From the NCBI GenBank assembly GCA_000708835.1, contig DF237036.1:62001-126000 (forward strand): a DNA stretch of 64,000 nucleotides. The letters are read 5' to 3'. How positions within the stretch are numbered: the stretch's first letter is position 1; each line of letters starts with the position of its first letter. The notes under the pieces are model-generated. The model saw nothing but the letters and a program-made list of their open reading frames with translations, did no database searches and was not told the origin of the DNA. The translations under genes and the position numbers were made by a program. This stretch comes from Klebsormidium nitens (lineage: Eukaryota; Plantae; Klebsormidiophyceae). Shown in pieces: positions 30-54,369 of the stretch.

Positions 30-1290
30 ATTGCAATATCAAGCAGGTGTCATTGTCCAGTCGCATCGCCCTCTCCTAATGGCATTTCAGATGATGCACT
101 TTGGCGAGATTGTGCTGGCCCTTTCGCAATGTCCACGTAGCAGTCGAGAAGGGCACAAAGAAGAAGAGGAGGCTAGCGTAGTTTCCACCGGAATCTTCGC
201 TTCGAAAACGTCAAACGAAAGAGGACTATACGAAATAGTCAAGGAGAGGCCAAGAGACGACCATCGCCTGTTCTCCAACAACAGCCGTGTGTAGCTTTCC
301 GCAGCTTCTTGGTAACTCTCCAATGTCAGTGCATGCTAGTTAAACTGAGCTAGCAATGCTGCACCCTTTGCGTGAAACCTCAATGACGAACCACCACCTC
401 GAACGCCAGAAAAGCTGGATCAGAGAATGAAGAACTGAAGGAGACTCTTGCCTGTACTTTGGAAGAAGTCTCTTGTATTAGATGTCCGTCGCCTCTTGAT
501 GGTGGCTTCAAAGAGAGTGCATGCTGGCAAATTTAGCTTATGCTTGCTCGCACCGCTTCAGGAGATAATACTCTGATCCCGGGACTGAAACAGAAGAGCG
601 AATGATCCGTGGAGAAAGACTTGCCTGTTCTCCAACAATAGCCGTTTGTAGATGTCGGTCGCCTCTTGGTAGTGGCTCCCCAGATAGTGCACACTGGCAA
701 GACTCAACAAGTACGTGCTCGTCCCTTTCAACGAATAATACTTTGCCGAGCCACGATCACTTCTCAGGAGTGAATCAGCAGAATGGACCTCAGAAGTGAA
801 TCAGCGAAATGGACCTCCACGATCCGTGAGGAGACTTGCCTCTTTTCTCAATGAGCAATCTTTGTAGGTGTCCTTCGCCTCTTGATGGTGGCTTCGTAGA
901 GTGCACGCTGGCAAACTCAGCAGATACCCGCTCGCGCCCTTTCAGAAGACAACACTCCGATCCCGGGACTGAAGCGGGAGAACAAAGAAACCATGAAGAG
1001 AGACTTGCCTGTTCTCTAAAAGTATTCTCTTGTAGATGTCCGTCGCGTCTTGGTAGTGGCTCCGCAGATAGTGCACGCTGGCAGGACTCGGCTGAAACTT
1101 GCTCGAACCCTTTCAACGAATAGTACAACTGCCGACTCACGAATCTGTTCCAGATGTGAACGAGCAGAATGGACAATTCCAGAGGAGACTTGCCTGTTCT
1201 CCAGAAGAAGTCTCTTGTACTTGTCCGTCGTTTCCTTGATAGTGGCTCCGTAGATATTGCGCGCTGACCAAAATGAGCTTGTACTTGCAC
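30..1290 (-). repeat. Tandem array of seven degenerate copies (about 170-215 bp period) of the 3' half and 5' splice site of IFT56 exon 1384-1579, inside the downstream intron
   Basis: The motif (a/t)cttgcctg, which is the reverse complement of the exon-end/donor junction, recurs near 446, 619, 834, 1003 and 1188 and in the real exon at 1378. Each is followed by about 85 bp similar to the exon end. More decayed copies lie at about 262-330 and 60-115. Spacers alternate in a dimer of about 385 bp (ctc[t/c]gatcccgggactgaa near 571 and 955; ccctttcaacgaata near 723 and 1108). Confidence 0.9.
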
Positions 1291-1383
1291 GCCCCCTTCG
1301 AATGACTTCAACGACAAAGCACGAAAGGAACGCGCAACGGAACCAGATGGCAGATGGCAGATGGCACCCTGAACGAGACTTGC

Positions 1384-3574
1384 CTGTTTTCTAGAAGAAG
1401 TCTCTTGTAGATGTCCGTCGCCTCTTGATAGTGGCTCCGCAGATAATGCACACTGGCCAAACTGAGCTGGTCTTCCAGGCTGTCCGTCAGTTGCTGGTGG
1501 AACTGCATCAGCTTCGCCTCATCGCCCGACTTATGTGCCAAGTGAAAGAGAAGCCGCGTTTGAAGAGGGTTCTTCGGACCTGCAAAGCAAAGTACTTGGA
1601 TCCTTACATCCTTACATCCTACATCATTGCGGTTATTTCTAACATCGCTTGCTGTCAAGAATTGTTAGTATCTGTCAGTTCCTGGCGAAACTGCATCAGC
1701 TTCGCCTCATCACCCGACTTATGCGCCAAGTGGAACAACAAGCGCGTCTGGAGGGGCTTCTTGGGCCCTGTGATTCTGTAGATCCAGAAGATGGGAATTC
1801 TAGACAACAATCTTCTTTTTGGTCTAAGATCCAGCTTCGCTTACTCGAAGTCTGCATCAAGAGCAGATTCTTGGGGCCTGTGATTGAAACGTCTGGATCA
1901 ATCAGTGGCAAGAAACTCAGTGAACAAGAAGTCCACAATGCCGTCGAAAAACCAAGGCAAATGTTCGCTTCGCACACGCACTACTCTAAACCTCCCTACC
2001 TAAACAATCCGACCGTCCCAGCACTGTCTTCGCGTTGTTCGCTGAGCTTAGGTTTCTATTTATAATTCAAAGCGGTGAATAGAGGGTAAGGGCTATGGTG
2101 CGATATGTGATTGCAAACTTGATTGAATTGAAAGATTTGCATCAGCGTCGCCTCCCTGCGTGACTTGTCAAACGAGAGAGGCGTCTGGAAGATCTTTTAG
2201 GGCTCGCAAAACGACAGGGCTCGGGTATTGTAAGTCGTCACCACCTTCCGCAGACGCTCAAAGCTCGGGCTGTGACGACTTTCATGGAGGGGGTGACGTT
2301 CTGAAAGTTGTTGTCCGACTTGTGCACAGAAAGGAACAAAGATGCCTTCTATTCGCAGCGTTCTTGAGTCCAAAAACAAAAAGGTTCCGCTATAGTAAGA
2401 TCATCACGCCCCTCTGATGCAGCCAATTTCTCTCCCATGCTGATTCCCGTTCGTCTTTTCTGCTTTGCCTTTCTCTCCCTTGAGCAGTCAGATCCAAGCC
2501 AGAACCTCCCTCACCTTTCAGCGCTTCTTCCTCCGCCTCCTTATAACGCCCCATGTGGTATAAGCAGGCAGCCGCATAGCTATGGTACATCCCATCTGCG
2601 TGTGGCTGCTCAGCCAGCTCCTTATAGATGGCCAGCGCCTTATCGTGTAACCCATAGTGGAAGTAGCTGTACGCTAACCACTCTGAGGTCTTTGGATCCT
2701 TCTTGTCAGCCTGCAGTTACATGGAACGGGTGGTTGAGAAAAGCTGAGATTTTCTAGAGAGCGCAAATTTGAAAAGCACTTCAGCTTGGCTGTCAGCGAG
2801 ACGCATTGATTCCAATGGACTCCTTCCAAACAGGCTGCACAAGAGCGTTCAAGTCCGAAGAAGCTGGGTTTTGGCACTTCAATGTAAGAGCGTTAACTGC
2901 CTGTGTCAACCTGAGAAACTTTGGTGTTTAACCAAGCCGGTCAATGATCTTCTCATTAAAGTTGCGACCATGCCAATGCTGTGTAAGGAGGGAGAGCATT
3001 ACCAAATTGGCCTCCGAACAGGTCCTGATGTCTCCACTGACGAGCCCGGTATGCCTCAGGCGGTTCTCAATAGGAAAATTTTGATCAAGCTGGTCAAGGT
3101 CTACCCCAAATTTGGGAGCAAGCAATCAGTCGGAACCGTCACTGAAGTTGGCTGTCACCAAGACATTCTGACGGAAATCAAGTTCGATTAATCAGCGCTA
3201 CTTCACAAGCCAGTAGCTAGTGGGGTTACATGCAAAGATTTCAAGTCCTTCTAAGCAAGGGAAAGCTTCCTTCTACAGCCTATTCCGAGCACCCTGCTAC
3301 TTACAGTATTGTCTAATTCCAATTGGCTACAATCAGCTACAAACCGACCAGTCTAGATTGACTTCGCACCAAAAGTCGGAGGTTCCTTGGAAGAAGCTGT
3401 AATGGTAAGCTTGAAGGATCAGCTCACCAGTCGGCGGAACTCCAAAAGTGCGACAGCCCCTACATAGTCCCGCTTTTGCAGCAGCTCCTCGAGCTCTGGG
3501 ACCTTTGGCTTGGAGTCACGCTGCGTTTTATCTGTCTGCGCACCCGCCGTGCTCCTTGCTCTAGAGAGTATCAT
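1384..3574 (-). CDS. IFT56: Intraflagellar transport protein 56 / TTC26 (DYF-13), 5' part; exons 3428-3574, 2515-2710, 1384-1579; the gene continues beyond the left edge
   Basis: Spliced translation MILSRARSTAG...PELEELLQKRDYVGAVALLEFRRL|ADKKDPKTSEWLAYSYFHYG...YKEAEEEALKG|PKNPLQTRLLFHLAHKSGDEAKLMQFHQQLTDSLEDQLSLASVHYLRSHYQEATDIYKRLLLENR matches the conserved TTC26 N-terminus as I recall it (RLLFHLAHK, DQLSLASxHYxRSHYQEAxDIYKR). Phases are consistent (0, 1, 2). The donor after 1384 is CAG|GCAAGT (GC-AG intron). Confidence 0.95.
1670..1890 (-). repeat. Copy of the acceptor and 5' half of IFT56 exon 1384-1579 in the upstream intron (1670-1767), plus a short second copy near 1865-1885
   Basis: The reverse strand reads ATCACAG|GG CCC AAG AAG CCC CTC CAG ACG CGC..., giving GPKKPLQTRLLFHLAHKSGDEAKLMQFRQELTD and a stop shortly after. 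The real exon gives GPKNPLQTRLLFHLAHKSGDEAKLMQFHQQLTD. Confidence 0.92.
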
Positions 3575-4790
3575 GGTGCTTCCTGGCAATGATTACAGGC
3601 CAGAATGGATCAACCTTGCAAGCCCCATCTACACTTAAAGAAGGACTCTGCCTGGCAGTCGGGACCTTAGGCAATTCGGTCTCAGACCCTGCTGAGCTGA
3701 CCAAATCGAAAACATTGAATTGACCAGGTGGAGACACAGGCTATTTAATTTAGGAGCCAAGTTGTGCGATCTTTTTTCACAACTTAGTCTTTTTGTGTCA
3801 CATTGCTCAAATCCCACGCAGGCCCCTGCGGACTGGTCCAGATGATGTATACTCTACCAAAATGGGCTTGCTTTCTTGGCCCAGCAAGTGTGTATGCGTG
3901 GCTCGAATCGAGCTCCTTCACAGGTGGTGCCTGGTCTGCCAACTGATCTATGCACAGCGCTTGCTTCTGGCGTAATTTAAGATGCCTGGAAGAAGTGAGA
4001 GGCAGCTGTTGGTTCGAAAGCAGGGGCACTGAGAAGTTCACATCAAGCTATCAGCTGGCCATTGTCCGGTCACGACTTTGAAGAGTTCTGATCAAAAGCT
4101 GAAGGCTGAAGCAGCTCTCTTCTTGCACACGAGGATTAGGGTTCGCAGATGCTCCAAGGCCGTTTCGACGCGCGCTGTGCGCGCAAAATTACAAGGATTT
4201 CACAAATTAATCTACCGGTACTCGCGTAGCGTTACCGTTACGTACCGTTCGTACCGCCGGCTTCTTTTGACCGCAGCAATCATTCCGAGAATTTCCGACC
4301 CATAAACGGTCGGACGGTGGCCCCATATTACCCCCGGCCACGTTGCATCGAATAGGCGCTGTAAACCAACCACAGTATCGACTGTAGAGTGCAAACCCCA
4401 AACAAGCATGCGGCCATACACCGGTAGCGGGATTCTTGACAACCCGCCGAGCCATTTTTAACCGGATGGACCGGAAGCACAAGTTGTCAGTACATTATTC
4501 GGTTATTCGGTATATTCGGTTTGAATCATCTCCACTTAAATGCTCATATCGTAATCTGCAGCGGGCCGCGGCCAGTAAGATCGTGAGTCCAAGTCGGGCC
4601 CGCGCCGCCCTGTTTTTTATGCGAAAATTAATGAGAGCTTCGAGTGACGTCACCAAAGATTCGGAGAAAGACCAGCGGTAAACCGCTGCCAAGTGGCACC
4701 ATGTAAAGCTCAGATGTTCTCTCATCCGTTCGATGTAGAAGATCGCCATTAAGGCTTGATCGACAGACCAATCACAGCCATGTATCTAGA

Positions 4791-5408
4791 TTATGGAATA
4801 GAAAGTTGCGGTTCAGTTTGCAGGACAGGTGGCGGGCGTTTATCAAGAATGCAGAGCTTCCGATCCGCACTGCAGGCTGCAGCACGCTGCACAGGCAGAG
4901 TTTCGTGCCGCAGCTTCGTGAGAAAGCTCCCTCCATCCAGGCGTTGCAGGGAGTTCTTCAAAAAATTTGAAGAAAGCTGCCAATGGCAGTGGAGACGCGG
5001 TAGGACAGTTTTGCTGCCGAAAGCATACATTAATCTGAAGGCCGCCCGCAAGCTGAGGATCAAGAGGTCTTCCAGGTTGGGACAGAGAGGGGGACAAGGG
5101 TCCTTCTCTAGAATGATTGATCATCCTGACAAGGAAGGGTGCTGCAGACTGACGGCTTTTCCACCTTGCGTAGATGGTAAAGCTGGCCCCACGTAACTTT
5201 GAATTGTAGTGAAGGAGGTTGGTCCATCAATCGTTTCTCCTCCTCCTAGGTGCAACATTGTCAACTTAGTTGGCTCGTAATTTGTTTTAGGAGCAAAGGA
5301 GGCGCCGCGCTGGCTCAACAGCAGCTCCTTGAGTACCTGGTAATGCATTGATGCTTCCTGGCATTTTAAGTACCTGCCAGGTGTCGGAAAAAAAGTGACA
5401 GCTGTCAC
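4791..5408 (-). pseudogene. Possible decayed LRR-like coding remnant between IFT56 and the PB1 gene
   Basis: ORFs 5121-5408 and 4791-5063 are in the same frame, interrupted by one TGA. The frame contains LRR-like pieces (TKLTMLHL, CPNLEDLLIL). The family assignment is weak. Confidence 0.3.
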
Positions 5409-5438
5409 GGTTGCGTCAAGCTTTCAGCAGAAGCTGAA

Positions 5439-15997: not shown

Positions 15998-18900
15998 TTA
16001 GAAGATGTCGTCCCAGTAGGAGTGGTCTACGACCTTTGTCAGCGGGGCGTCCATTTCGTCTTGTCGGACGTCCTCGTCGATGCACAGGTCGCCGAAATTG
16101 TCCACCTTGGGTGGGATCATCTGCAAGCGGCGAGGAGCGATCCCTGTTAAATGCAGGTTATGGGACAGAGAGACTTCGACGGCAATCAGTTTAAAGCTGA
16201 TCCCGAACGGGCCTTCTGGCGTTTGGGTCGTGCTTGCCTTTGAATACGTCGAGATACATTGAGTGCAGCCAAAATAGTCAACTCAACCCCGAAAGAGCTC
16301 AAAAGGACACCCGCCGGCGCTTTGTCCTTCAAGCCGATTCACAGGTTGAAAGCTATCTCTCTGGCGAAGACGGAGCGAAGCTTCGGTTCTGCACCGTGCT
16401 TGCCCACAATTATTTGAAGTCAGCTAAACTGAGCGACACAAGCCGTCCACTCTCGGAAGGGGCCAAGATCCCTTACCGGCGCTTCCTCCTTCAAGCGGAT
16501 CAACAGGTTGAAGTTGATCTCCTTAGCGAAGAAGGGGTGGTCTTTGATGTCCTTCGCTCCATTCTTCCCGCAGCCCAGTCTAGTTTCCGGGTTTGGGTCC
16601 AGCAGCTTTCGGATGATGTCGACGCACGCGGGCGTCATGTACGACGGGAAGCTTAGCCGGCCCTCCGTGATGCGCTGGAAGACGGTCTGTACAAGATTCC
16701 GGAAAACCCGTTAGAGGTTCCGTCATGTGAGGGGGCCCAGAGATGCCACTGAAGGTTGTTTTTCTCAATGAAGGTAAAGTAAGCCAGCGCTCGTGAGGCG
16801 CAAAATCCGTGTATAAAAGATGCCCCCAAATCCCTGAAAATATGTTTCGGGTGTCTAATAGGGTGCAAAAAGGACTCGCGTCAGAGTTTGCAGGAGCCTG
16901 TGGAGAAGAAGATTGAGAAGATGCGATTTCATACGGCTATGGAATCCGCCCAGCTTCTTGGATGCTCACGTACTCATATCTATGGAGCGGCAACTTTCTT
17001 GCGCGAGCAATGGGAAGGGCTGGAAAGATATGGTCAGAGCGGGGGCGTACCTGCGGCGGATCATCCCCCCTGTTGAAGGGGCTGGTGTTGGTCACCATCT
17101 CGAAAATCATGCAACCCAGCGCCCAGTAGTCGACGGCCTGAACAAAGAAAAGCGGGAGAATTTAGTAGAACACAGAATCCAGGTTCACGCACCTCAATGT
17201 TGCGTGTGAGCATGTGAAAGGTCGATCGACCAGAAGTGTACCATAAGACGATATAGCGTGGAACGCGGGTTCAAAAGAAAAAGGTTTTGTTAACTACAGG
17301 CTCAGTCAATGTTGTTAGGGAGACTCCGAAAGGAACTAGGACTGGACACGCATCAAAGGCGCCTAAGAAAGGAAGCAGCCAGACAATAATGGGAGGGGCC
17401 GCTTATGGTGGAGGTGCCTCAGAAAGCGTGTGGGAGAGAGTAAGTCTATGATAAAGCTACAAGAGAAAAAGACTTCGAACAACCAGAAACAATATGGTCG
17501 CCAAATCCAAAACGAACGTTCACGTATTGTTGTAATCCTACTGCCAGATCCCGTTGGGACATCAATCAGCAAAATCTAGCACCAATGGGTTTTCAGAAAG
17601 AGCCAAGAAAGCTAAATCACAACCGTAAGGCAGAGATTCACAGATTTACCCCCAAAGCTTCTACCCCAAATAGCGCTTTTACCCCAAATAGCCCCTCATT
17701 GCTTCGATACCAGTGTCGTCTAGCTAAGCGTTTCGCCGTCAGACAGTGGTAACACAGCCTCGCAGAAGATAGCGAGCAAGCGGAACAGGAACGGAATCAA
17801 GCGGAACGCTCACCTTGGTGTGGCCCTGCCGCCGGATGATTTCCGGCGCCATGTAGTCCGGCGTTCCGCACATGGAGTAGGTTTTCCGGTGCGGAGCGAG
17901 CCGCTTGGCGAAGCCCATGTCGATCAGTTTGGGGTAGCCGCTCTCGTCGATCAGCGTGTTCTCCGGTTTCAGGTCCCGATACACGATGCCCTTGCCGTGC
18001 ATGTACTCCAGCCTGCAAGAAGCTCCCGGGGAATGCGGTCAGTGATTTGAATCGAATATCGATTTTGAGATGGAGTGCGAGGAAGGAGGTCCCGGTACAC
18101 GATGCCCTTGCCGTGCATGTATTCCAGCCTGCAAGAAGCGCCCGGCAAATGCGGTCAGTGATTTGAGTACCAAGCTTGAGATGGAGTGCGGGTCTCGGTT
18201 AAGGATGCCCTTCTTGTGCATGTACTCCAGCCTGCAAGAAGCGCCGGGCCACGCGGTCAATCGGATGAACTGGCGATCCCTTGATTTTGGAGACTTTCAG
18301 AGAAGGTAGACTTCGGCACAAGGATGCTTATTTTTATTTTCATCCGCTTCAGCCTGCGAAACGGGCCCGAATGGCGCAGTCGCTTGCGGTGAACGGGGGA
18401 CTATTTGACGATCAGCAGCGGACTATGAGAGCGCGGAAAGGTCTGGGCTGAAGATCCGCGTCATCTACCTCCGCTTCAGCCTCGTTATCGTGCTCGGGAG
18501 GGCGGTCGGTTGTCAGAACATGGTAGCCGTCTCGATGTTTGCCAGAGAAACGCGATATACATTTTGGCGTTTTGAGTTCAATCCTTTTTCAGCGAAGATG
18601 GAACTCAAAACCGCAATCTGATCAGAAGAGCTTGGCAACGAGCTCGTGGCGCGGAGATCAACCTCCTCCCATGCCGATAGATCTCCCTAAGCCAGACCGA
18701 GAAAAAAATTCAACGATGTTTGAAGCCCTCTCGTTTCTGCCAGGAGCAACCACGCGCTCTGGATCGTTCAGATTCAACTCATCGCGCCGAAGGGAACACA
18801 CAAGCTGACGGTATCCCAGGAATTACAAGTGCGTCACGACGATCTTTGCCTTAGACACTTACGCCAACAAGACGCCGCCGGCGTAGAAGGCTGCTTCCCA

Positions 18901-21900
18901 CTCCTTGAGCCGGCCCGCCTTCTCCATGAACAGGAACAGCTCCCGCCCAGTAGTCAACTCTTGCAGCAGATACACCTGCCAGAGGAAGCAGAAACAAAAT
19001 GGGTCAGCGGTCTGTCGAGTGGAGCTGGTTACAGTGGACACCAGAGTTGGTGTAAGCGTCATGACACGCCGTCACAGGTCTACTTGCCACGACTCTTGAA
19101 GATCTTAGACATTGAAAACAAAGTATGCTTCCAGGCAAAACAATAAATTTCTTGAGATTTGTTGCGAAAGAGCGGGCAATCACAGTGTTGCGGTGTACGA
19201 TGCTTCTGAGGTACACCGGGTAATTTGTGTGGTGTAATTTTACACAAATCAGAAATCATACTCAGGGCTTAAAACTGATCCTTCAGGCCGCCTTAATGTT
19301 TGGAGGTCGGAATGATCTTCGTATCAGAAAGGCGCCCCAATACTTGCATGTGCAGCTTATCTTTGCGCAAGATACAGAGAAAAGTCGAACCGGGTTCTAA
19401 AGCATCATGAAGATGAAGCTTTTGGCGATTAGAAGTCGTCAGAATACTCCCATTATGTTTGTACTTGAAGATTCAGATGAGCTTCGCGATGAAAAGATGC
19501 TCAAGGTCGCTCGGGAGAAGTCCTTTCCATCGCGTTATATCACCACAGAAAGTCGAACATCCTTGAAGTAGACATAAGCTACCAGATTGCCTTGAGTTGT
19601 TTTCGTCCTTGAAATTCCGGATGATCGTCGCAAGGAAGGGGTGCTGTAGCTCACCAGCAAATTCTTTTTGTTCCTTGTCATCGCGCGACGTACAAATAGT
19701 ACAGACAAAAAGATTCCATTGTTTGCAAAGCAAAATCCTCACATTTTCCTTGTCCTTGAAGGTCCGAATCAGCTTCGCGATGAAGGGGTGCTCCAGCTCG
19801 CTCATGAGCAGCTTCTCTTTGGTCCTTGCCATCGCGCGACGTCCAAACAAAAAATTAAAAAACGATATTCCCGATGTTTGCAAAGAGGAATCCTCACGTT
19901 GTCTTTGTCCTTGAAGGTCCGGATGAGCTTCGCGATGAAGGGGTGCTCCAGCTCGCTCATGAGCAGCTTCTCGTTGCGCAGGTGCTCCTCCTCCTGCATC
20001 CGCACCACCTTTGTCTTGCTCACGCACTTGAGCGCGTAGTGCTCGCCCGTGCGCTTGTTATAGACCAGCTTCACCTTGCCAAACAGACCTGCGGAGATTA
20101 TGTGACGTCATGTTTGAAAAGGTGACGTCATGTGGTACAATTGCGCATCCATGCTGATACCTTTTGGTAAGAGAATCTGAGCGCGTCGAGCTCGCCCGTG
20201 CGCTTATTGTACACCAGCTTCACCTTGCCGAACAGACCTGCAGAGGAGGAGATGACGTCAAGTTTGAGTGGCGGCCAATGTGATTGACGTCACGTTCCTT
20301 AACTTTGATCTAGTATAGGACTTGTTTGTGAGCGCGTACTGCTCGATCAAGGGCTTGATGTCAATCAAGTCGCTCAAACGCCCTGGGAAGCTTACACTTG
20401 TAACATCACGCTCTTGTCGGTTGGCCTGAGAAGGTGTTGACGTCAATTCCGAGCTCCTTTGACATGTTAAGCTGCTTCGAGCGCGTCGTGTCCACCCGTG
20501 CGCCGGACCGACCCGATCGGAAAGGGGGGTGAAGCCACGTCTTACTGGTAGCAAAAACCTCCAGCTCTTACTTCCTGCTCCGCTTTAAGCGCACCAAAAG
20601 ATTTCAAGAAAGCAGAATACTTCAACTTGATAGTCAATCTTTGGAGAAAGTCGTTCACAGCAATGCTTTACCTGTGCCCCGCAGCCCCAGTCCCTCCAAT
20701 TCCTCCAGCTTGATCGCTTTAGCAAATGCATCAAGCTCTTCCCTCTTCCGGCACCGGTTGCGCACCACAAGACTCGAGGAATGAAAGCTTTCAGTTTGAT
20801 TTGCCTATGCTCTTGACACAACCTTCGTAACAAGAAGTACCTACCTGTGTCTAACTGCCCCATCTCCTCCAACTCTTGCAGCTTGATTGCCTTGAAGATG
20901 CCCTTCAACTCGCCCTCCTTCCACCGGCGCTCGCTCCAACAAACGCGGAAAACCAGTCTCTCAAGACCCGTGTCTCCTTTGTCTTTTGATTAAAAGACGG
21001 CTTAAAATATATTCTTACCTGTGCCCAGAAGCCCCAGTTCCTCCAACTCCTCCAGCTTAATCGCCTTGACGATGCCCTTGAGCTCGTCCTCCTTCCGCCG
21101 CTGCTCGCGCACTTCCTCGAGCGGGCCCAGGTTCGCCTCCAAAACCGCCCGATCTAGATAGTACAGCTCGACGGTCCCGGGCACGGTCGGGGAGGAGCCC
21201 CCGCTGCGGCCGCCGCTCTCTTTCAGGCCTGCGAAAAGGGGTTGTGAGTTAGTAAGGCTATTTTAGGGGTTAAGGTTTACGGATTTCAGAGACGGGGTTG
21301 CCCAGGTAGAGTATTTACAATGGCTGAAGTCAGTTTCGTGACACCGGGGCCGGGCCAAGTCGGGAAGGAGCTCCCGCTGCTCACCCCGCTCTCTTTCAGG
21401 CCCGTGAAATCGCATAAATTGAGGGAAACTTTATGCTTAGATTTCTATGAGGCTGAATCAGTAAGGGCTCAGTAGCCGGGGCCCTGGGATCAGTCTCGTG
21501 ATTCCGAGGTTTTTCGGAAGAGCCCCGCTGCAGTCCTGGCGCTCTCTTTTCAGCTTGCGACAATGGGTTCTGGATACTAGGTTGTCTTGATGATAGGTTA
21601 TAGGGTTCTAGAGACGCCACTTAGTTCGCGAAGTACGTGGCTAGGATAATAGAGAATTCGATGATAGGTGAATCGCCGCTGTGGCCGCCGCTCAGCGCCT
21701 GAAAAACAGACAGTTTGCCCAGAAGAAGATACCAGCTTTTCTTACTTGCGACGGGGCTCCGCAGGTCCTGGAACCCGCGCACTTCGAGGCCGCCCGCGAC
21801 GACCGTCTCCTTGCGCACGCCGGACCCGAATCAGCGCTCTCCTCAAATCATGATTCCTGTTAAACAACTTCTAACCTCTCCCAAGTCTCAGCGCTCCAAA

Positions 21901-24900
21901 ACAGACATCCTCAAAAGAAGATACAAACGTTTCTCACCTGCGACAGGGCTCCTCGGCTCCTGGAACCCGCGCGCTTCGAGGCCGCCCGCGACGACCGTCT
22001 CCTTGCGCACGCCGGGCCCGATCAGCGCGCTCTCCCCGAAGAACGCGCCCTTGGCGTACGCTCGCCCCTCGCAGCTGCTGCGCGCGCCGCGGCCGCCGGC
22101 CGACGCGGCGGGCATCTCCTGGACGGTGCCCTGCGGAACACGGAAAAGCAGCCTCGATACGCACAGATCTCAACGGAGATTGTCTTTCTTGTCTTATATT
22201 GAGCCTGAAACTATTCGAGATGCAGAAGCGGAACGGCCGTCTCTGGAAGCTGCAGCTCCTTGGCGGTCCCTTGAGCCTATTAAGGATGCGGCCTTCCATT
22301 CGCAGGAATGTACCCTGGCCAAATTGGTCGCCTGCCTTCGCATTTGACAGTTTTATGGAGATTCAACGTGCGCCGAAAATGATAGGTAAGCTGCCATCCA
22401 GAATCGTAGAAAGGCAAACAACACGACATTATGAATCGGGCGTAGACGGCAGCAAAGTCTACGGTGGCCCCCTAGAGAAGGACGGAAGCAAATGTGCCTT
22501 GTAGACTCACATAACACTCCTTTTGAACACGTCTCCAAGAACGCTGCACGCAATCTGGATACGTCAACTGCAAGAGCTTCCAAAGTCGAGTAAACGCACC
22601 TTGCGAACGACGTACATCCGGTCCGCAGGTTCCCCGGCCTTATAGATGTTTTCGCCTGGGGCAAAGCGCACCACCCCCATGGCCGTGGCCAAAACCTCCA
22701 CCTCGCTCTCGGTGAGGTAATCCAAGCACGGCACGGACCTGGAACACAAGACTTGATCTCTTTCAAAGCGATACAATGGTAATGAATCCAAATATATGCA
22801 AAATGGTAAACAACTCGAAACTACCCCTGTGGATTCTTGATCATATCAGCCTCCCTCTTGCCGTTCGCAAGGTGGATGCAGCGTCAACGACAGAGAGGCG
22901 CGGTTTGGAGCACGATAGTGGCTACAATCATCTCTTTCGCTAGCTGCTGCGGAAGAGCGTCTCGTCGCTCCCTGCGAGCTCGTCCGAGCAGGCACGGACA
23001 TTCTCTGGGGGTGTAGATCTAAAGGACAGAGTGAAGGTTTGCATCCCGATCGAGTCAACACAAAAACTCATCCTTCCTGTGAGCAAACGCCTAATACGAA
23101 AGTCTACCACGCAACACGAGAATCTGGGCGACCGCGCGCACCTGAGCACCCGCAGGTTGGTCGCCTTCATGAGGATCTCTTGGATTGGCCCCAGGATGGC
23201 TGTCAACTCGCTCAAGGAGATCGAAAGGACGACAGAGCCGTCGCCGGATTCCACGACGGCCGTCGTCGAGCAGATGATGTGGGTCCCCCCCAGCAGCGCC
23301 TCGTCGCCGAAGCAACCGTACGTCGTGACGCAGGCTTTGGCGGTCTGGAAGGCATTAAAGACGGGTCAGACAGATGCAACCCCCCGAAACTAGAACGAAG
23401 CGACGAGCTTTGATTATCTGTGCGCCCAGCAGCGCACTGTCAGCGAAGCAGCCATAATTTGCTCGTCGCCGACGAGATATCCACAACCGTTTCAGTGCTT
23501 GTTAGTGCCTTCTTTGGTTTTGTTGGATTCGCGTAGGACTGTTTTTTTTTGAGGCATCTGTACCGCGCAGAATGATCATACCAAACCACATCAAAATCCC
23601 CACCTGCAGCGACCGAGTAGACTGGAGCACGGGCGTCATGGGCGCCCTTCCGGTGGGCGACGGCAGCGTGTTCGTCCTCGACAGCTTCACCGGTTGCATG
23701 CCCAGCGGCCGGCGCAACGCCCCGACCTTTTCGGACGCTTCTCCGGGCGCTTCCGAGTTGTCCTCATCGTCCGAATTCGAGTCCGCTTCGTCGAACGGCT
23801 GCTCGGTGAGCTTGAACCGGGACGGCGAGTTGCTGCCGTGTCCGGTGGACATGGTTCCGGTGACCGGAAGGCCCTGCGCGGTTCCGCTGGGGCTGCCCGG
23901 GGCGCTTCCGCCGCCCGCCTTGGGGGAGCTTTCGCTGCGGAACATGCCGCCGATGCGAGAACCCCATCCTGCTGCAAAATCGCAAATTTTTATCATTGAC
24001 TACACAGTTGTCGAAAAATAATCTGCGGGACATGCCGCCGATGCGAGATCTCCATCCTGAAGCGGAAAGTTTTTGGAAGCTCCATCAATATTCAATCAAA
24101 ATGCACAAACTAATGCCGACTCAATTGAAAGGTAACTCAATTCACTAAATGCGGATTAGGCGATCGAACGTCGTGACTGGAAGGAGACACCCGTGGACAA
24201 CCAGAGCTGCATCTCAAGCTACTATCTGCAGTTTAGAAACGACCATTTCCGTACCTAAATCTCGATATCTTGTAGCGAAGTGTTCATATGTAACTGCGGC
24301 TTGAATTGAAATCAGAAAAAAAGTGTACGGCTCTCGCCTAAAATGAACGACCAAGCCTCAGATCTGTGGAGCCTGATGGTTCATGCCAAGAGTTCACGCT
24401 CTATACAATCAAGCCTCAGGCTTTGATGGCTGGAAGTATAACAGAGCCATACCTGAGTTCGACGTCTTTGAGCGGGTGAGGACTGGGCCGGGCGAACTAG
24501 AGGGGGAGCTGCCCCCCGAGGGGCTGCCGGGCCAATCGCCCATGTTCGCGAGCGAGATCCGCCCAGATTGGACGATGTAGATGCGCGCCTGGTTGCCGGA
24601 AACGGTTCCGGCGCGAGTGACTTCACTGCCGCTGCAAAAGCATGGACTTCGCGCCAATCAGAATGAGAGCCAGGTGCGTGTTTCATCCTTAGCCATTTTC
24701 ATTTGCGGTTTGAGTAAGAAAACCAGTTGTAGATTTGTAAAGAACCGGGAGAATCTGATCATGGAAGGGCCTGCGTAGAGATCTCGCGGCGAGGCTATCT
24801 AGCTGGTCGTCTTTCAGGTTTGTTCGAAGCTTCTGTAAAGGCTCGGGAAAAGACGCACCTCGTGCATAGGTCAAACGAGCCACGGAGAACGGAAAGATCC

Positions 24901-27900
24901 TAAAGAATGTTCCCACCCCTCCGCGGAATCTTATCAAGGAAGGGCCTGCTCCGTAAAGCTCTCGGCGAATGACTGACTCGGAGCTGGTGGCTTCCAGGTC
25001 TTATCAATGCCTCATGGGCAGACAATTACAACCGCGGCCGACGTGCGCGTCAAAATAATATTCAGTAGACAACAAGATGACCTTGAAATGGATACCGAAA
25101 CGAATCCAAAAAGGGTGCCAAGCCCGGGGAGTCTTACCAGGGAGGGGCTGCTCGGTAAAGCTCTCGGCGAGGGTCTCGTGCTAGTCCTCTTGGAGGTCTG
25201 TTCAAAGCTTCTCTATAGACCCGGAACACGACGCAACCCGCGCACTTGCCAAGATAACCACACAAAACAACGAAAGAGCTTGGAAAAGGCCTCCAAGCCC
25301 CGAGGGATCTTACCAGGGAAGGGACTGCTCAGTGAAGCTTTCGGCGAGGGTCTCGAGCTGGTCGTCTTTGAGGTCGGAGAGCGCGGGCACGCGCTGCAGC
25401 GCGACGGTCACCAGCTGCAGCTGCAGGCCGCGCCGTACGGTGCCCAGAATGTGCGCGTCGAACAGCGCGCGGTCGATCGTGATCGCGGTAACCTGCACGG
25501 GGTGAAGGCAGGAATGTTAAAAATTCCATCTTGAGGCTGCGACAACAGCCCGTGCCGGGAGGCGCGCGCGCTGACAATTGCGCGGTTCGACTACTAGAAT
25601 TATGGCCACCTGGAGGGGCAGATTCACCAGGCGGGGGCGAAGCAAAAACCCAACAAGAGAGGAACTAAACGAGGCGGCGGCAACTCTCTCCTCGGGGCTG
25701 GAGTTGAAAGGGGGGACTGGGTCTTCACGAATCAGGTGATTAGTAATCAAAGAGAGATCAGTTCTGCTTCAGGGGCGAGTCCTCATAAAAACCCAAAACA
25801 TCCATGATTCCATACCATCTCTGAGGCTGCCACGTGGTCAATAAGCTCGTCTGCCACCCGCTTCGAGGCGATCATGACCCATTTCCCCCAATCAAGAAGG
25901 CTAAATCAGCGTTCTGAGGTCTATTTACACTTACCGTGTCGGAAGCTGCCACGTAGTTGAAGGTGCTGATCTGCTCTCCGCTCAGCAGCATGCTTTCCCC
26001 GAGCACCGCCAGCCGGCCCAGAACGGCCGCCGTGTCAGCGCTAGAGACCGCCACCTGGCGCATGCCGGCGCGAGGGGGCGCGCCGTTGGTAACTCTGTAC
26101 GAGAGATAATTTGTAAGTTTCGACGAAGAGGATTTTGGATTGGCGTTGAAATCGGTTTCTCGATTGCAAGTAGGTGTCGTATGGATGCAGTAGTAGCCAG
26201 CGCGCCGGGAGCGGCAGACTTGATGTTTGAGGTGGTTTTTTCTTCTCTTTTCCGAGTCACGTGCTAGCTCGACGAAACATGTTGGCGACTGTTTAACGGT
26301 TGCTTTAATTGAACGTCGAAGCGCACTGACGTCCGTATTCACAGCCACGGAGAGCCACAAAAGCTTCACACGTACGGGTTTCCAAGAGATCTGAAAGCTT
26401 ATCAACGCCCACCTGACTTGGCCCTCCGCGATAACGTAGACCTTCTCCATGATGCTCCCTCCTTTGATGAGGCACTCCCCACGCGAGAAGAGCTCAGTCT
26501 TGCTCTGGTTGGAGAGGTTGACCACATCACGGGTCGCGAGTTTGTGCAGCGCAGGGGCCTCTCGCAAGATCTGCGACAAAGCGGAGTAAGAAATTTGAGC
26601 GAAATTTCAAAATGGATATCAGTGGAACATCTGAGGATACGAAGTCTGTAACGGATGGAAGATTGCGTATTATTTCCCGACGCGTAACAGAACCCTAAAA
26701 TCACCATCCAGTACAGACGGAGTACCTTGGTTGCCAGAGTGTTTTTCCACCCCGATAAGACCCGGATCCTTCCTCAGTTGCTTGCGCCAGACCAAAATGG
26801 ATCAACGCGCGCACTGATTCTTATTCTTTGCCAATTTAGACTGCTGATTGATCTACAGAAACTTTCCTGCGAGCTACGCTTCGCTCTCTATTACTGCGGA
26901 GTTCGTAGAGAGAACCCTCACCTGAGCCGGCTTGGACTCGGTCAGATGACGCAGGATGATGCTCTTGAACGTCACCCGGTCCACGAACCACAGTAAGCCG
27001 TGGGTTAGCGCCCTAACCGTCGCGTTTCGGGGGCAGTCATAGAGAAGCGCGATCTCGCCGAAGCTCTCCTCGGGACCCTTGACCTTGACCACAACCGGGG
27101 GGTCCGTTCCCTGCAAAGAAGTGGAAAGGTTGTGAATCTCAGACGGTCCTAGTTATCTCGTAAATTCAATGGTCACGAGTGGTCGTTCCATGTTCTCCGA
27201 TTCCTGTGGAACTCTTCAAGCGCAGAAAGTGTCCTCATTACCACTTTCTGGAAAGTCTTCCAGAATCAGCAAACTTTCGGTTCTGTGCTTGGCGACAAAA
27301 ACAGGTAACGTTGACAAGAACAGCTCTCCTCCTGCCAGCAAATGCTGCTAAAATATACAAATCCAGCCAATCCGTGCTCCCTGCTCCTTCCAATGTCTGT
27401 GTTGACAGAAGTTTTGCACTTTGAGTCAGAAACATAGAAGATTTACCCCTAGTTGCCGTTCCCTGAAGCAGCCATTCTCAGGTTTTCGTGAACGCTTACC
27501 TCCTGCTTGACGACCTCAAACTCGCCAACGTCCACGATGTAGAAGTTGTCACCCATGTCGTTTTGCTTGATGACTTCCGTTCCTGGCGCGATGCGAATGT
27601 CCGTAAACGCGTCGATGATCTCCTCTCGGAGCGCGGGCTCCAGATCGCTGAAGATGAAGTTTTGGCTGGACACGAACGAAAGTCGACTACGTCAGGTTTT
27701 GGTCCAGCTTTTCTCAATCGGGTCACCTCAACTCCTTTCCATCTCCATTGCGGATTCACTCATCCATCCCTTCTGGCCCATGTCCCCACTCGGAGAGCAT
27801 TTGGGTGTGCCACTTCTTTCGTGCTTCAACTGCTCTACCGTTTGGTCTTGGGGATCCACCCTAGCACCTAGAATCTTGCTATTTTACTCGGAATCTTAAT

Positions 27901-29899: not shown

Positions 29900-32560
29900 G
29901 CAGATGCGCAAGAAGCCTAAGAAGTCATCTGTTGAGCTGGTGACCGAGCATCAGCTCACTGAGATACTGAGCTTGCTGCTTGTTATCTATAGAAACTCCC
30001 TTGATTTTAACGTGTTGACACAAAACTTGAAGCATGACATATGTATGTCAGACAGCTGCAACTGCAAGGATCGCGAGCTCACCTGTTGGCTGTGGAACTG
30101 CGTCAATGCTGCCTCCACCTCTCTAATCTGTGGCGCAGACCAGGACTCATGGCCCTGCATGCCAGCCTGTTCAGAGACGATTCAACTTTCAGTCCAATGC
30201 TGCCAGCCTCCTTGCAGGCAAAGTCCTGTCCGAGTCCCAGCCTTTTTTTACGTCCAGACCCAATCTTGCTTTCCTCATAAATATCTCAATTCAAGAGCTT
30301 CCCATTCATCGATTTCAGGAGCGTGAGCATCGTTGTGCGTTCTGCAGAATGATGTGAGAAGAATCCGAACAGGCCCTTGTGCAAAAGGCAGCTACCCAGG
30401 TCTGGAGCTCAAACATACAGAGTTTCCTTTTCGATGCAACCATGAGCACTATAGCTTGCAATCAAGCCTTCGCATGCTCTAAGGGTAGCATGGAAACACA
30501 GGGGTCCCCTGGATTTGACATGCCTACCTTCACAATCGACCTCACAAGCTTGACATGAGCTTCGGTGGTGTTGATGAGCCGGTCCTCTAGGGCAGCCAGG
30601 ATTGCATCTGCATACGTGACCGGTTGCTGGCTTTGGTTCAACACAGCTACGTGGTTTGTCAGCAGACTATTTCTGCCATTGCGGGTGTCCACATTCTGCT
30701 GCTGAAAATCAATATATAGGGTCTAATCCAACTTCAGCTTCCATTTGAACAACACGTTCAGCTTTACAGAACCCTTGTCATCTCAAGATATGCTGAGCAA
30801 CAGTGAAGCTAGAACCCTTTGTAACTGGAGAGGGGAGGGTTGCCGCATATGTCAGTAAAACCTTGGCAATGACCAAACATGCCTTTAGGCCTTCGAGCAT
30901 ACTTCTCCATCGAGCGAATAACCCTGGCATAATCAACGTGATGATGAGCAACTCTTCTGTTGAGCAACCTGTTCTTCTTGATTGGACCTTGCAGACACCT
31001 GAGAGTGCACTGTGCAGATATTCAGCCTATCAAGGATACCAATGATAGCTTCTCCTACTGCCAAGGAGCAACCCCAGAATCAATACAAATCTGGACTCCT
31101 TCAGAATTGTTCACATCTTCTTTGGAGGATCTGGCGCTGATCACTACCTATCTTATTGTGAACCAAGCTTGGCAAGAGACTCTCTGATGACTTCTTGTCA
31201 AAGTCTCATTCAGCAAAATCTCATATCCAGATCAGTTGATCTCTGGTTGCTTTCCTCAATCAATGCTGGTGCTTTTTGCCCCCCAGCGTCCTGGATGAAA
31301 GCCGCGCTTACCTTCGGAATCCATTGCTGATCGCCCCCGCAATGCAACCCTACTGCCTTTCTCAAGCAGCCCCAACAGGAGAGACCTTTGGCGTTACATC
31401 TGCATTTCAGATTAGCAGACCCTGAGCACAAGATTCTTCTGTTAGCACCGGGTCCTCTCAATTCGCTCTGTGGCTTGCTTTCCCCCAGCGGCCACGCCTG
31501 TGTTCCTCCAAATCCTCTTTGCTACCTAGATGCGATTTTCTAGAGGTCACCTTCTCAGTCTGCCGCCGACAGGGCAATTTATCCTTGCCAGAGGGCCGAA
31601 TACAATGATCGTGCTCTCAACCCGTCACCATTTTGACAAACAGCTAGCTGAACAAGGTTTTAGAAGATTGATGACACCTTGTGACGTCTTCTCTGCTGTT
31701 TTTGTTTCGCATCCAGCTTGCCGCACGGCCCTCATAATTCAATGCCAGTGGCCCCACAAATATGGTCAGCAGCTGCTGGGGAAAGATATGCCATCTATCT
31801 GATTTCTCCATTCTTTTTGAGTGAAATTTTGTCAGCCCACCAGACTGAGAAGACTGAATCAACTCAGCCGCCTGCCGGGAGCTGCCCATGTGACGTACAC
31901 GCCTGCACGCTGAGACACCCGACCCTTGACACTGGCACAACTCTCTTGGGTTAAGGTGCGCGTCGACCAGAATCCTACTTTGCCTCCAGTGTTGCCTTTA
32001 TAGTACCGCCATGTAGGATAGTACGGTACCTTTTCAGGCCGCACTAGTGCTGATGTGGTGTGTACCTTTTTGACCACGTGGATACATTGGGCCATTCGAT
32101 TGGCTCAAAGCTCGGGAAGAATCTGGCAAGCTTTTTGCACCTTTTTGGTCTGAAACATACATACATACGTACGGTATACCGTAACTTGAGACTTCTGTAA
32201 GTAAGGGGCAGTTCCAGTTACGCAAGTCCGAGTGTCAAAAGCCTCCAACCCATCCAGATTAGCATCCAGATTCCTTCCAGATCAGATGTCGATACGTTTC
32301 TACAGCCACGGCCAGTGCAGCTGCTTGCGTTGCAGTGATTGCATGACCAACTGAAACATAGGTACAAGTCACAGTAGGTATGCTTAGGGTATGATTATTA
32401 CCATCGGGCATAGGCCACGACTGTAAGTTCACGCACATGACGCGCGCGCTTGAATCTATCAACGGCTCAGATTCAGCCGCTTTCAGTGAGCTGTATGATC
32501 GACGTCGCGAACCCGGTGGATCTGGTAACCGGTTGCTTGTTCCGACCAACCGAATCCAAC
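29900..32560 (-). mobile_element. Degenerate coding remnant, possibly from a SWIM/SAP-containing DNA transposon (Zisupton/KDZ- or MULE-like)
   Basis: Broken minus-strand frames include CQCQGSGVSACRRV (SWIM-like CxC...CxH with H replaced by R), a Cys-rich LKCRCNAKGLSCWGC, and LQVLCQHVKIKGVSIDNKQQAQYLSEL (SAP-like) near 29950-30030. There are many stops and frameshifts, and no termini were identified. Confidence 0.25.
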
Positions 32561-32744
32561 GTTGGCAGCGGCCCGGAGGCGCTGTGTTTGTACTTCATGA
32601 AGGAGCCGGTTGCAAATTGCCGGCCGGCCCCCGCGGGCCTGGCCGCCTGCGGCCTGGGGCAAACTTCAAAGTACCGCAATTTTCGCCCGGGGGCCGGTCT
32701 GCACCGACCCGGGGGAAGCCGGCAGACCGGTACAACCTGACCAG

Positions 32745-33057
32745 GGAGGGCGGGTATGGAGAACAGGATCCAAAATTCCTGATCTGAGGCTTCCTGATCT
32801 CAGGATCGCAAGGCCACGTGTACCAGCGTAATGCACTCGATCTGAGCCCTGAGCGATACATCGGACGGCTCCGATTGACTAAGTCACTTCTACCAGGCAC
32901 CCCGGACAGTTGGCAAACGCACAGATGGGGCAAGCTAGGGGATACATTACCGGCACATTTTAACCCCCTACGCTAGCTTCCTGAGATCCGGAATGTCCTG
33001 AGATCGGGAACCTGAGATGAAGTTCTGGATCCTAGCTATTCTCCATACCCGCCCTCC
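32745..33057. mobile_element. 313-bp MITE, PIF/Harbinger-like (3-bp CAG TSD)
   Basis: Left end CAG|GGAGGGCGGGTATGGAGAA and right end TTCTCCATACCCGCCCTCC|CAG give a perfect 19-bp TIR. Imperfect inverted similarity extends about 60 bp (GGATCC, GATCTCAGG). CAG is duplicated at 32742-32744 and 33058-33060. Confidence 0.85.
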
Positions 33058-33864
33058 CAGGAGCTATTGCTGCGAGACATGCGGCCTCCGATTCATGTAA
33101 TTGTAGCCCATCACGTCAGCTAGGTGCGCCTATGCAGAGCCGGACTCGATCGGACCGTGAGTCTCGCTTCTACAATTTTCCGATAACTTAAGCGGTATGT
33201 TGGCAACATGCATGCAGGCATGGCCTTAAAACTGCATCATGACCTTTGCTTAATCCAGTGATCCGGCCATAACAAATCGCATTGCAATGCACCAGCTAGA
33301 CCGTCGGAGACTCCTCAGTTGAGTCAGCGATGCACGATCGATCAAACTATGTGGAATCTAGAATGTGATGTGAACGGCCATTATAGTGGCAGCGCCTTTG
33401 ATTTCGAAAGCATCATTGCGTTTACTGATTTCTTTGCAAAGACGTTTGCCTAGTGCATTGGGGAACAACAGAAGTACGGTCGAAATTCAAGTCGGTCCAA
33501 CAAGCGTGAAATCAATACATAGTACACGATAAGCGACGGCGCTGCGCACCACCCACCCTGACTATGCAAAACTTGTTTGGCCGCCAGTGACTCGGGCCAT
33601 GCAAGTGCCACTGATTCTAAGTGCTTCGATTGCAGACTCGATCTAGCCAGCGCCCGGTGCTTTATAGGAGACTGTATCATGGCTGAACCGCTGCTTCGTC
33701 TGGACATCATACTACACATAGAAGCGAGATGTCGCAACTTGTGAAACGAACGTCGTTGACTTAAGCGGCTCATTTGACGCCAGCGCAGTAAGCAGTCGTT
33801 GTGCCACTTCATGCTATCCCTTGGAAGATTGCTTCAAGGGAGACAAGACTGGTGGGCGTCAATG

Positions 33865-36800
33865 TCAACTATACTCTGCGAAGTTTGTGTGACCCGTAGA
33901 CCTTGCGTGCTCTACCGCTTCTTTCTGACCTTTCAAACCTTGTTGGCAGCTTTGACACCGCAGCGTGAAGTTCTGAGTATCTGTGAACTTCTTGGCTCGA
34001 TGTTGCTCATCGACCAACTTTTCTGCACACATGCGAAGCCCAAATGGTCAGACCTCCCGTTTGTGACCTCCCGACAAACGGTCTTCCCCCTTATTAAGAC
34101 GTTGCGTCCAAAGATTCGCCTATTCAGAATCACGGCAAGCATTGGACGGAACGTTAAATGTAAGCTCCACTCTTGCTCTGCTGACTTCGCGGACAGTTTG
34201 GACGAACGATTCAACCTCCACTCTTGCTCTGCTGACTAAACTACCTACGGTTCAGATTGCAGACCCCGAGAATTTGCCGTCCTAAATTTGAAGTTTACCG
34301 TCTTCAAAGGTATTTTGTGGGCGAGGCGTCTCCAACCTTAACTTACATATGGCAGAGTACAATCCTCATCCCCGGAAGCCCTTTCATGCTTCGATATGGG
34401 GTGAGATACGGACTGCGGATGGATTCTTCTGACACGCGAATTCGGCTGACTGCAAAGAATCAGGAGCCGGATGACAAGCACGCGGGGTCGACAGAGAACT
34501 AGGAAGAAAGAAGAAAAGCAGATAAGCAAGATGGTCGAGGGATTAGAGCCGAGAAGGGGTCGCATTTACCTGCTAATTGCGTGACGTATCCTACCCCCCC
34601 GGTTTCGTCTACCGTGAATATCGTGACGTCGAAGTCCTTTGGCGCCCCCGGAAACATCTCGAGCGCCAGCGCATCGTAGTGAAGCCCGTCGTATATGAGC
34701 ATGGCTCGCTCTTTATAGCCTTCCCCCTGCAGGATAAATATTGCCGCACCTAAGGAAAGCACTTTCCAACGGAGAGCATAAAATATCAAGGACCTAAACA
34801 TAGCCTGAACTGTGCCCGTTCCTAGCGGGAAAAGGATCAAGATAGAGTCTGGCGCTCCGCCCACAAACAGAGCAAGCTGCCGTTTCAGCAAATAACCGGC
34901 CTACACGTCTCAAAAATATTCAGAGTTCGCTGCCCTTTTCTAACGATCTCCGTCGCTGGGCCGGCAGATCTGAAAGATTTACCTCAAGCTTTCTGGAACC
35001 TCGAGCTGCTCAATTTAGCGATCGTGTCGTATCGCCATTCATTTCTTGGCCCCTTTGGGCGAAAAGCGACCTTGATAGCGCCACAGAACTTCCAAGTCTG
35101 CCGAATCAAAGTTAGGACTGACACGAGATCAAGGCTTGATCTTGCAGTGGCTGAATCAACGATGACCCAGAAGAGATGGCCGAAACTACCGAGCTTCCTG
35201 AGCGTTACGTTTATTCACACTCCGAGCACCTTTTTACTTACTTGCTTAGCCTTCTGCCTACTCGCCTCTAGTGCCAGCTAGCAGATTGTTGCAAAGGTGA
35301 TGGCTTTCACACTGGAAAACAGGTTGCTATATCAGGAGCAACACAGGAACTGCTTCGCATGTGTATTCAAAGATGTTCCATCTCGAAATAGGCGCAGAAA
35401 ATTTTTGTCCAGAAATGTGCAGCAGCTTCGAGGAATATATCAAGCGACCCACCTGCCCATATATGTCGCACCGTTTCGTCTGTATATCGTAAGCCGCAAT
35501 CTCTCTTCCGTAATGGTCCGCCAGAACCGATAGCTCAATTGCGCCCCCCCACTTTTGCCGGTCTAAGATCCAACGGCAGTAATCCTCGTTGCTCTTCTCA
35601 AGCACTGCTTCATCGTACTGTTCGGGATCGGACCGCACTTTGTTTGCGATGACCCGCCGAAGCTCCTGCGACTTGCCAAGGTCATGGTCCATTACATACC
35701 TGGGGGAAAAGCACTCACAGTAAAAATCCAGTTATCGAGTTCGATTCCCTGGGTTTTCTCACTTCAGGACCTTTTTCCGTAACGCTCTTCAATGAACCAA
35801 CCTTGTTGCGCTTGCCCTCCGCAGTCCTGCAACTTTCCAAGGTCATGGTCCATCACTTCGTGGAAAAAGGAAATGCTTCAGGTTTCTCTATTTTATAACT
35901 CCTCAGCTCCAGGGCATCACGCCCTTGAAATTGTTTGAAGTCGGACGGCACTGTGACCCTTGTTCTTGAACCATAGAGCTCCCTGCAAGTGCCTGGAGTT
36001 ATTGTTCTCAAAACTGACCCTATGAGAGCACCGTTACTGCGGCAATCCTCTGGACCATCTCCACCAAGCAGTGAGAGACTTTTCTCAGCTGGCGATTCGT
36101 GAGCGGTAAAGAGCATCTTTCGACTGGCAAACTCCTTTTCTCCAGGAATCAGAATATCCCCCTCGTTCACTAGGCCAGCTTATAACGGAAGATATTACCA
36201 GTGATAGGCACTTGTTATCAGGGCATAAGAAATGGCGTTCAAATGCCCGCAGACTCAACAAGTTCAGGACTGACAGCCCTGGCTGTTGATAGTAGCGGTG
36301 TGGCACCAACGACAATGTATTTTGTGGACGCCATAAATTGCAGCCAAAAGAACCCAAATACTTTTAAAAGAAAGCACTGTGATGCGCAGTATGCAAAGGA
36401 ACATCCCCAGCACAAACCAACGCGACTTTGAGTATATTCCACTGGGGGGCTTTCTGGAAGACACATCTGAAGATTTTTATCACAAATGAAGCTGCACACG
36501 CGAAAGCCTTTGACACCTACAAACGTTCCATCAAACCTGACGAACACCTTTTCAAGCTCTCAGCCTCCGTCACAGACCGACATCCAAACCAAACCAAACC
36601 AAGACAGATGGCTGCTCCATAACATGACTTTACTAGCAACACTTTACCGTTCGCTTTTTCTGAAGAGGGGTGAAGATGGGACCCCAAAACCACTTCCCGA
36701 AAACAAGTTATAGAAGTTTTACAAGTTACAGATGGGTTATGTGGTGTAGCCTGCATGAGCATGTACTTTCAAGAGTAGTTCAGGGTTTGGTCGAGCAACT

Positions 36801-54130: not shown

Positions 54131-54369
54131 TCAGAACGAGAAGCTGTGAGGAGAAGATCCCCAAAGCTCATCACTGCCGTTGGAAACAGAGGACTTGACA
54201 ATTCGACCAGGACAGCAGATGTTTCGCACGTTCAGATCAAAATCCCGGACTGCAAACCGCTACATGGCCGCTCTGCAAGATACACTCACAACGAGTGCAC
54301 GTGTGACGTTGCGCTCCAGGCTAATACACAAGAGTTGGCTTTGCACCCTGATTTGACATGCAGCCCTTC

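Follow-up and report, generated by a model that had tools for sequence, protein, structure and literature searches.

How does an intron come to carry partial copies of the exon that borders it? The question is raised by a stretch of 64,000 nucleotides of Klebsormidium nitens DNA (contig DF237036.1, positions 62,001 to 126,000; the window in what follows), in which an earlier note had described more than 25 intronic segments that repeat an end of the adjacent exon, nearly always with the splice site there, in three genes encoding IFT56, a PKG-like kinase and an OTU protease. Alignment of exons against their flanking introns confirmed about 28 such copies in these genes. The arrays probably arise by tandem duplication of short segments straddling an exon-intron junction, with selection filtering the products and the spare copies decaying neutrally.

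The window is eukaryotic, has about 50% G+C and holds many spliced genes. The entire 64 kb was subjected to a sensitive self-comparison and to a repeat finder, and RNA contigs from four runs were aligned to positions 16250-22249. The seven kinase exons that they define there lie on the minus strand and are separated by six GT..AG introns, 364-930 nt long. Each RNA-supported exon was aligned to both flanking introns, with shuffled controls. The self-comparison revealed 22 direct and one inverted local repeat. The repeat finder recovered these families as well, spaced 88-216 nt apart and in one case 384 nt. Exon positions 1 to x were copied only into the upstream intron, and positions x to the end only into the downstream intron. 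The strict polarity, the absence of inverted copies and the absence of whole extra exons claimed in the earlier note were upheld for all of the approximately 28 copies. Lagged alignments showed that a unit consists of exon part, splice site and intron part, arranged head to tail. The duplicated segments measure 88-216 bp and the arrays reach seven units, the copies being 64-95% identical to their exons. With 27-103 nt, the exon part never makes up more than about 53% of the exon; in about 26 arrays the junction falls 25-65% of the way along the unit. The copies are located as follows.

39 to 1383, minus strand: donor-side array of IFT56, six to seven units of about 170-216 nt.
1384 to 1579, minus strand: the IFT56 exon that is the source of two arrays (196 nt, GC-AG donor), recognised from its open frame, homologues and splice context.
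1671 to 2224, minus strand: two acceptor-side copies of the same IFT56 exon (1671-1770 at 82% identity, 2138-2224 at 72%).
16314 to 16408, minus strand: one donor-side copy of kinase exon Ea (16477-16686, defined by RNA contigs).
18087 to 18255, minus strand: two acceptor-side copies of kinase exon Ec (17814-18012), with periods of 116 and 103 nt and AG kept in both.
19278 to 19821, minus strand: four donor-side copies of kinase exon Ee (19898-20088), with identities of 0.93, 0.80, 0.78 and 0.72 in order of distance.
20178 to 20503, minus strand: three acceptor-side copies of kinase exon Ee, the nearest holding exon positions 1-58 and an older one reaching position 88.
20668 to 20934, minus strand: two donor-side copies of kinase exon Ef (21019-21228), with a period of 173-174 nt and GT kept.
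21345 to 21572, minus strand: two acceptor-side copies of kinase exon Ef, AG lost in both.
21723 to 21847, minus strand: one donor-side copy of kinase exon Eg (21938-22132), 90-92% identical, GT kept.
24023 to 24073, minus strand: one acceptor-side copy of a kinase exon starting at about 23973 (predicted boundary), with a period of 88 nt.
24740 to 25198, minus strand: three donor-side copies of a kinase exon ending at 25317 (predicted boundary), of which the nearest keeps GT and the two older ones have AT.
35800 to 35869, minus strand: one acceptor-side copy of an OTU exon starting at about 35699, with a period of about 160 nt and AG lost.
39515 to 39775, plus strand: a lysine methyltransferase gene with one acceptor-side copy (39515-39586) of an exon starting at about 39775, outside the range covered by the earlier note.

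Copies were confirmed at seven kinase exons, fewer than the about nine counted before, and the methyltransferase is a fourth gene with the same feature beside the three named previously. In the donor-side unit of IFT56, the GC donor is preceded by about 90-97 nt of the exon 3' end and followed by about 85 nt of intron. This donor (CAG/GCAAGT) opens the intron at 257-1384 on the minus strand; the five nearest copies retain C and A at intron positions 2-3 and align with the complete GCAAG motif. Units 1-5 of the array are 83-86% identical to the exon and units 6-7 are 64-67% identical, and the array has a two-unit period of 384 nt. The acceptor-side copies of IFT56 contain the first approximately 97 nt of the exon and the end of the intron. 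In the methyltransferase gene the copy lies about 230 nt upstream of the exon start and is followed by a 46-nt minisatellite of 4-5 units, apparently derived from the intron 3' end. Kinase introns with copies are 709-930 nt long, those without are 364 and 676 nt.

The spliced RNA contigs (four runs, six introns) join authentic GT..AG sites only. No repeated copy was included in any spliced contig of 16250-22249, and all kinase copies are intronic. Read in the frame of the exon, the copies contain gaps and one stop codon. The pooled ratio of the proportions of non-synonymous and synonymous differences (pN/pS) between copies and exons was 0.52, and about 0.5 is expected when a neutral copy is compared with a constrained exon. 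With the exons of the diverged kinase gene on metagenome contig L001 as outgroup, 75 of 78 non-synonymous differences were placed on the copy and 3 on the exon, while synonymous differences were divided into 28 on the copy and 19 on the exon. The pooled ratio and the polarised changes thus indicate that the copies decay as neutral DNA. From the 19 exon-side synonymous changes it follows that the copies preserve silent states that the working exon has lost, and to this extent the earlier proposal that they record former exon versions is sound. Decoy splice dinucleotides were intact in 26 of 44 copies, with about 29 expected under neutral decay; they are neither protected nor purged. Coding constraint on the copies, visible as almost exclusively synonymous differences, was considered and rejected, as it describes only the three youngest copies, and the pooled and polarised data fit neutral decay.

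The earlier note had proposed repeating the search in a relative, and contig L001 supplied one. A protein search with the open reading frame (ORF) around exon Ee yielded a single protein (68% of the query aligned, at 97% identity), which is encoded on this 89.8 kb metagenome contig of the Joint Genome Institute (JGI). The exons of the L001 kinase gene share 70-93% DNA identity with those of the window and intron positions are conserved, whereas the introns cannot be aligned; the sequence neighbouring the gene downstream is also conserved. Over 401 codons, amino-acid identity is 92%, synonymous divergence (dS) is 0.86 and omega is 0.07. The gene is a diverged orthologue or an old paralogue, and either way an independently evolving copy. 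We found 30 direct repeats and no inverted repeat in L001, 26 of the direct ones within 600 nt, and polar copies at the Eg donor, the Ef acceptor and donor, the Ee acceptor and donor and the Ea donor, with weak copies at Eb and Ec. Identity to the corresponding exon of L001 reaches 98% and the flanks are L001-specific intron sequence, hence these copies are much younger than the split from the window lineage. Six of the seven window junctions with strict calls also carry L001 arrays (hypergeometric p = 0.002, calculated by hand); under lenient calling the overlap loses significance (p about 0.16, likewise by hand). The acceptor copies of Ef and Ee in L001 keep AG in 8 of 8 cases. A direct repeat with a 112-nt period at 3330-3574 of L001, in a part of the kinase gene without a mapped exon, is probably another junction array. 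A further DNA run, X29, labelled as a different organism, contained 9% of the sampled words of 19300-21000, about the share of exon Ee alone, and its source may be a closer relative than L001.

How could such arrays form? Each would start with a short local tandem duplication of 88-216 bp straddling a single exon-intron junction. With the duplicate placed head to tail, the spare piece would necessarily fall within the adjoining intron, a spare acceptor with the exon start upstream of the exon and a spare exon end with the donor downstream of it. The polarity can be explained in this way because, when a tandem duplication spans a single boundary, the intron is the only place for the spare half-exon; no special system is needed for it, the geometry being sufficient. 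A spare half-exon that has no partner splice site would not be spliced and would decay as neutral DNA. Duplications of a whole exon or within an exon would change the mRNA and be removed by selection, which would be why neither was seen. More rounds would extend the arrays to as many as seven units and lengthen the intron. In some of these rounds the real junction would be duplicated afresh between new breakpoints; others would be in-register or multi-unit re-duplications resembling unequal exchange between repeats. At the DNA level we infer slippage, staggered-nick repair or unequal exchange.

Both modes of growth appear to have left traces. In the Ef acceptor array of L001 the exon parts measure, from near to far, 27, 67, 89 and 88 nt and the identities are 0.91, 0.90, 0.85 and 0.77, a gradient that fits new junction duplications displacing older ones outward, as the earlier note had supposed. 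In the Ee acceptor array of L001 the most exon-like of the four copies is the third out. Moreover, donor-side exon breakpoints are nearly equal in the window and in L001 (Eg, 93 versus 93/99; Ef, 116/120 versus 116/130; Ee, 107-111 versus 105). Together with the 384-nt period of IFT56, the Ee array and these breakpoints are evidence for in-register or block growth. Decay with distance from the exon, as reported before, is the usual state but not a strict rule, given that IFT56 units 1-5 are about equally similar to the exon, and the idea of a strictly ordered record falls with the two-unit period and the Ee array. What remains of the earlier interpretation is its core, a recurrent duplication anchored on exon boundaries that lengthens introns: introns with copies are longer and the same junctions are active in two lineages. 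From whole-unit identity matrices the succession of duplications in the IFT56 and Ee arrays could not be read, the noise being too high. We also considered an old exon split by insertion of the current exon; this was rejected because complementary halves occur in IFT56 only and not at Ee or Ef of either lineage.

Several observations weigh against a duplication process that is random in place and merely filtered by selection, and against the neutral, silent fate of its products. Direct pairs spaced at most 600 nt apart belonged to junction arrays anchored on a real exon edge in 20 of 20 cases in the window and in 25-26 of 26 in L001, compared with a null in which 27-35% of tolerated random placements inside a gene include a junction. 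Random duplication with a filter does not predict that every local tandem repeat is junction-anchored, nor the confinement of the junction to 25-65% of the unit, nor the limit of about 103 nt on the exon part, and no arrays were found in more than 25 kb of non-genic sequence in the window. The non-use of the decoys was judged from assembled contigs, which lose rare isoforms. One unspliced RNA contig of 204 nt (run X1, 21373-21576), with a depth like that of exons, lies wholly within the copy-bearing Eg-Ef intron, and it could represent a retained intron, a separate small transcript or contaminating DNA. Finally, the three youngest copies of the window differ from the exon at 1, 1 and 11 sites by codon position, mostly the third, a skew beyond the prediction of the neutral model in a sample of only 13 sites.

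That purely random local tandem duplications produced the arrays, the pattern being what selection and detectability leave behind, is unlikely. Such duplications do predict the polarity, the absence of whole exons and of repeats within exons, and the neutral decay of the copies, and because the exon is frozen by selection, recognisable similarity would last about twice as long in exon-copy pairs as in purely intronic ones. Even with this two-fold advantage in detection, about half of the arrays should be junction-free, and in the window 0 of 13 were, for which the chance is about 0.52^13 = 2e-4 (by hand, with a fraction of 0.35). Neither the empty non-genic sequence nor the recurrence of the same junctions in L001 agrees with random placement. 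The data point to a recurrent process linked to junctions. In both lineages, copies are almost absent at the exons of 87 and 113 nt, whereas all exons of at least 190 nt are affected. The restriction of repeats to junctions, the limit on the exon part, the shortage at short exons and the shared junctions suggest a junction-linked mutational bias, or else selection on the exon context of decoys combined with long-lived, self-renewing arrays. A junction-targeted mechanism, with breaks or repair errors concentrated at exon-intron junctions by positioned nucleosomes or by damage coupled to transcription or splicing, and with pieces of about nucleosome size being copied, is a tentative explanation of the preference, in which polarity would still be geometric. 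In its favour are the excess of junction-anchored pairs over the null, the central position of the junction and the size range of the exon part, the shortage at short exons, the young arrays at six of the seven strict window junctions in a lineage at dS 0.86, and the presence of at least three different exon breakpoints at one junction. Several points tell against it. The centring and the half-exon limit could reflect selection against decoys that have excess exon context or lie near the real site, and the common junctions and donor breakpoints could stem from old arrays maintained by in-register exchange. The lineage overlap is lost with lenient calls, and several multi-exon genes of the window are without arrays.

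It is very improbable that the copies are functional, either as hidden alternative exon halves or as selected decoy splice sites with a part in splicing regulation or in the suppression of premature termination. Decoy sites are often intact, as in the eight L001 acceptor copies of Ef and Ee, arrays occupy the same junctions in two lineages and the youngest copies differ mainly at third codon positions. Nevertheless, the pN/pS of 0.52 and the 75 of 78 polarised non-synonymous changes that fall on the copy speak for release from constraint, decoy retention (26 against 29 expected) is no better than neutral, and older copies fade to background in introns that are unalignable between lineages. The reading as alternative exons was rejected on the absence from spliced contigs and the neutral decay. 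Assembler stutter at repeats can be dismissed almost with certainty. Nothing specific favours it, except that a single sample, possibly the one from which the assembly was made, supplied all the DNA runs with the locus. On the other hand, the copies are imperfect (64-95% identity), four separately assembled DNA runs contain 80-99% of the words of 19300-21000, the 204-nt RNA contig matches the copy-bearing intron with zero mismatches, and the same architecture is present on the independent metagenome contig of a diverged organism; on these grounds the artefact was rejected.

Comparison with known systems places the single event but not the arrays. Tandem duplication of exons, as in mutually exclusive exons, involves whole exons that have both splice sites, remain open and are spliced in. 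It resembles the present case in the local, direct duplication of exon sequence into a neighbouring intron. The copies described here differ in that they carry a single splice site and no more than roughly half of an exon: whole-exon duplication with both sites was not seen, each copy comprising either positions 1 to x or x to the end, with an exon part of no more than 103 nt. Neither coding constraint nor splicing-in, both typical of mutually exclusive exons, was apparent from pN/pS, the polarised changes or the spliced contigs. Minisatellite-type arrays evolve by unequal exchange, with head-to-tail units, higher-order periods, in-register growth and greater similarity between neighbouring units. 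The head-to-tail units and the higher-order period of IFT56 are shared and in-register growth is suggested, yet here the unit at one end is a working exon fixed by selection and the unit boundaries lie at set distances from the splice junction. Internal gene duplications, that is to say short tandem duplications within genes, are reportedly common and can take in introns or exon-intron boundaries (Gao and Lynch 2009, as cited in PMC4974935). The present arrays share this short intragenic form. Arrays of half-exons restricted to the flanking intron, a limit on the exon part and recurrence at the same junctions of two lineages are not known to be described in that work.

The closest published case is that of the potato RdRp gene, in which a single tandem duplication crossing an intron-exon boundary created a new intron (PMC4974935); that paper discusses the event in terms of the Rogers model and refers to the work of Gao and Lynch on frequent internal gene duplications. 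The claim that no named system covers the observation is not supported in that form, since the single event had already been described there as tandem genomic duplication. As in that class, each copy lies next to its source as a direct, head-to-tail repeat, and the segment holds exon, splice site and intron, so that the signals are inherited from the parent junction. Intron gain was not observed: the spliced contigs use authentic sites only and intron positions are conserved in L001, existing introns being merely lengthened. Whereas published cases are single events that produce a new intron and an altered gene structure, the copy here stays within an existing intron with the mRNA unchanged, and a junction is duplicated as many as seven times over, with many junctions of a gene involved. 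Introner elements, which create new introns as a single mobile sequence spreads in dispersed copies (PMC9860276), likewise add intron sequence in many genes of one genome, but each array here resembles its own exon only, has no terminal inverted repeats and lengthens an intron already present. No match of an array to anything but its own exon was found, although 4 of 26 direct pairs, more than 3 kb apart, had positions outside this check; inverted pairs amounted to one unrelated pair in the window and none in L001. A published description of such junction-copy arrays was not found in the literature searched, whose coverage omits most subscription journals. The single event is of a known kind, and dense recurrent arrays within introns are a new variant of it.

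Exon-intron junctions in this algal lineage may conceivably be true hot spots of a break-and-repair error coupled to chromatin or splicing, which copies a junction-centred piece of about nucleosome size and never more than about half an exon, a reading held with reserve. If it were so, junction duplication would be a main, continuing driver of intron growth and a standing genome-wide source of decoy splice sites. A mechanistic junction preference would link genome instability to gene architecture or chromatin. The usual explanations of intron lengthening and of new splice signals are slow drift and transposons; in these arrays, successive stages of an intron copying its own border remain visible. 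The arrays are also a natural experiment in splice-site choice, in which dozens of intact decoys within 100-200 nt of real sites are ignored, and this bears on exon definition in the alga. Furthermore, studies of codon evolution gain a small internal outgroup from the earlier silent-site states kept in the copies. In annotation, such copies can easily trap gene predictors.

The host genes were identified as follows. IFT56 was named from homologues of the ORF at 1311-1664, all of them distant (identity at most 80%). The kinase gene extends over about 16000-27700 on the minus strand and encodes several segments predicted to bind cyclic nucleotide monophosphates (cNMP) and a predicted protein kinase domain, so that "PKG-like" seems a fair label. 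The window also contains the OTU protease gene, a PB1-domain gene, an mTERF gene and the lysine methyltransferase gene (Methyltransf_16), the closest protein clusters of which are mostly streptophyte. The sole local inverted repeat of the window (32741-32805 and 32996-33061; arms of about 65 nt, 80% complementary, 255 nt from start to start) lies between the kinase and OTU genes and has no relation to the exon copies. In the 18 kb at 46000-64000 the five longest ORFs gave no Pfam match and no tandem duplications of 90-220 nt were seen; this region has a steady AT skew of +0.11 to +0.20 on the plus strand.

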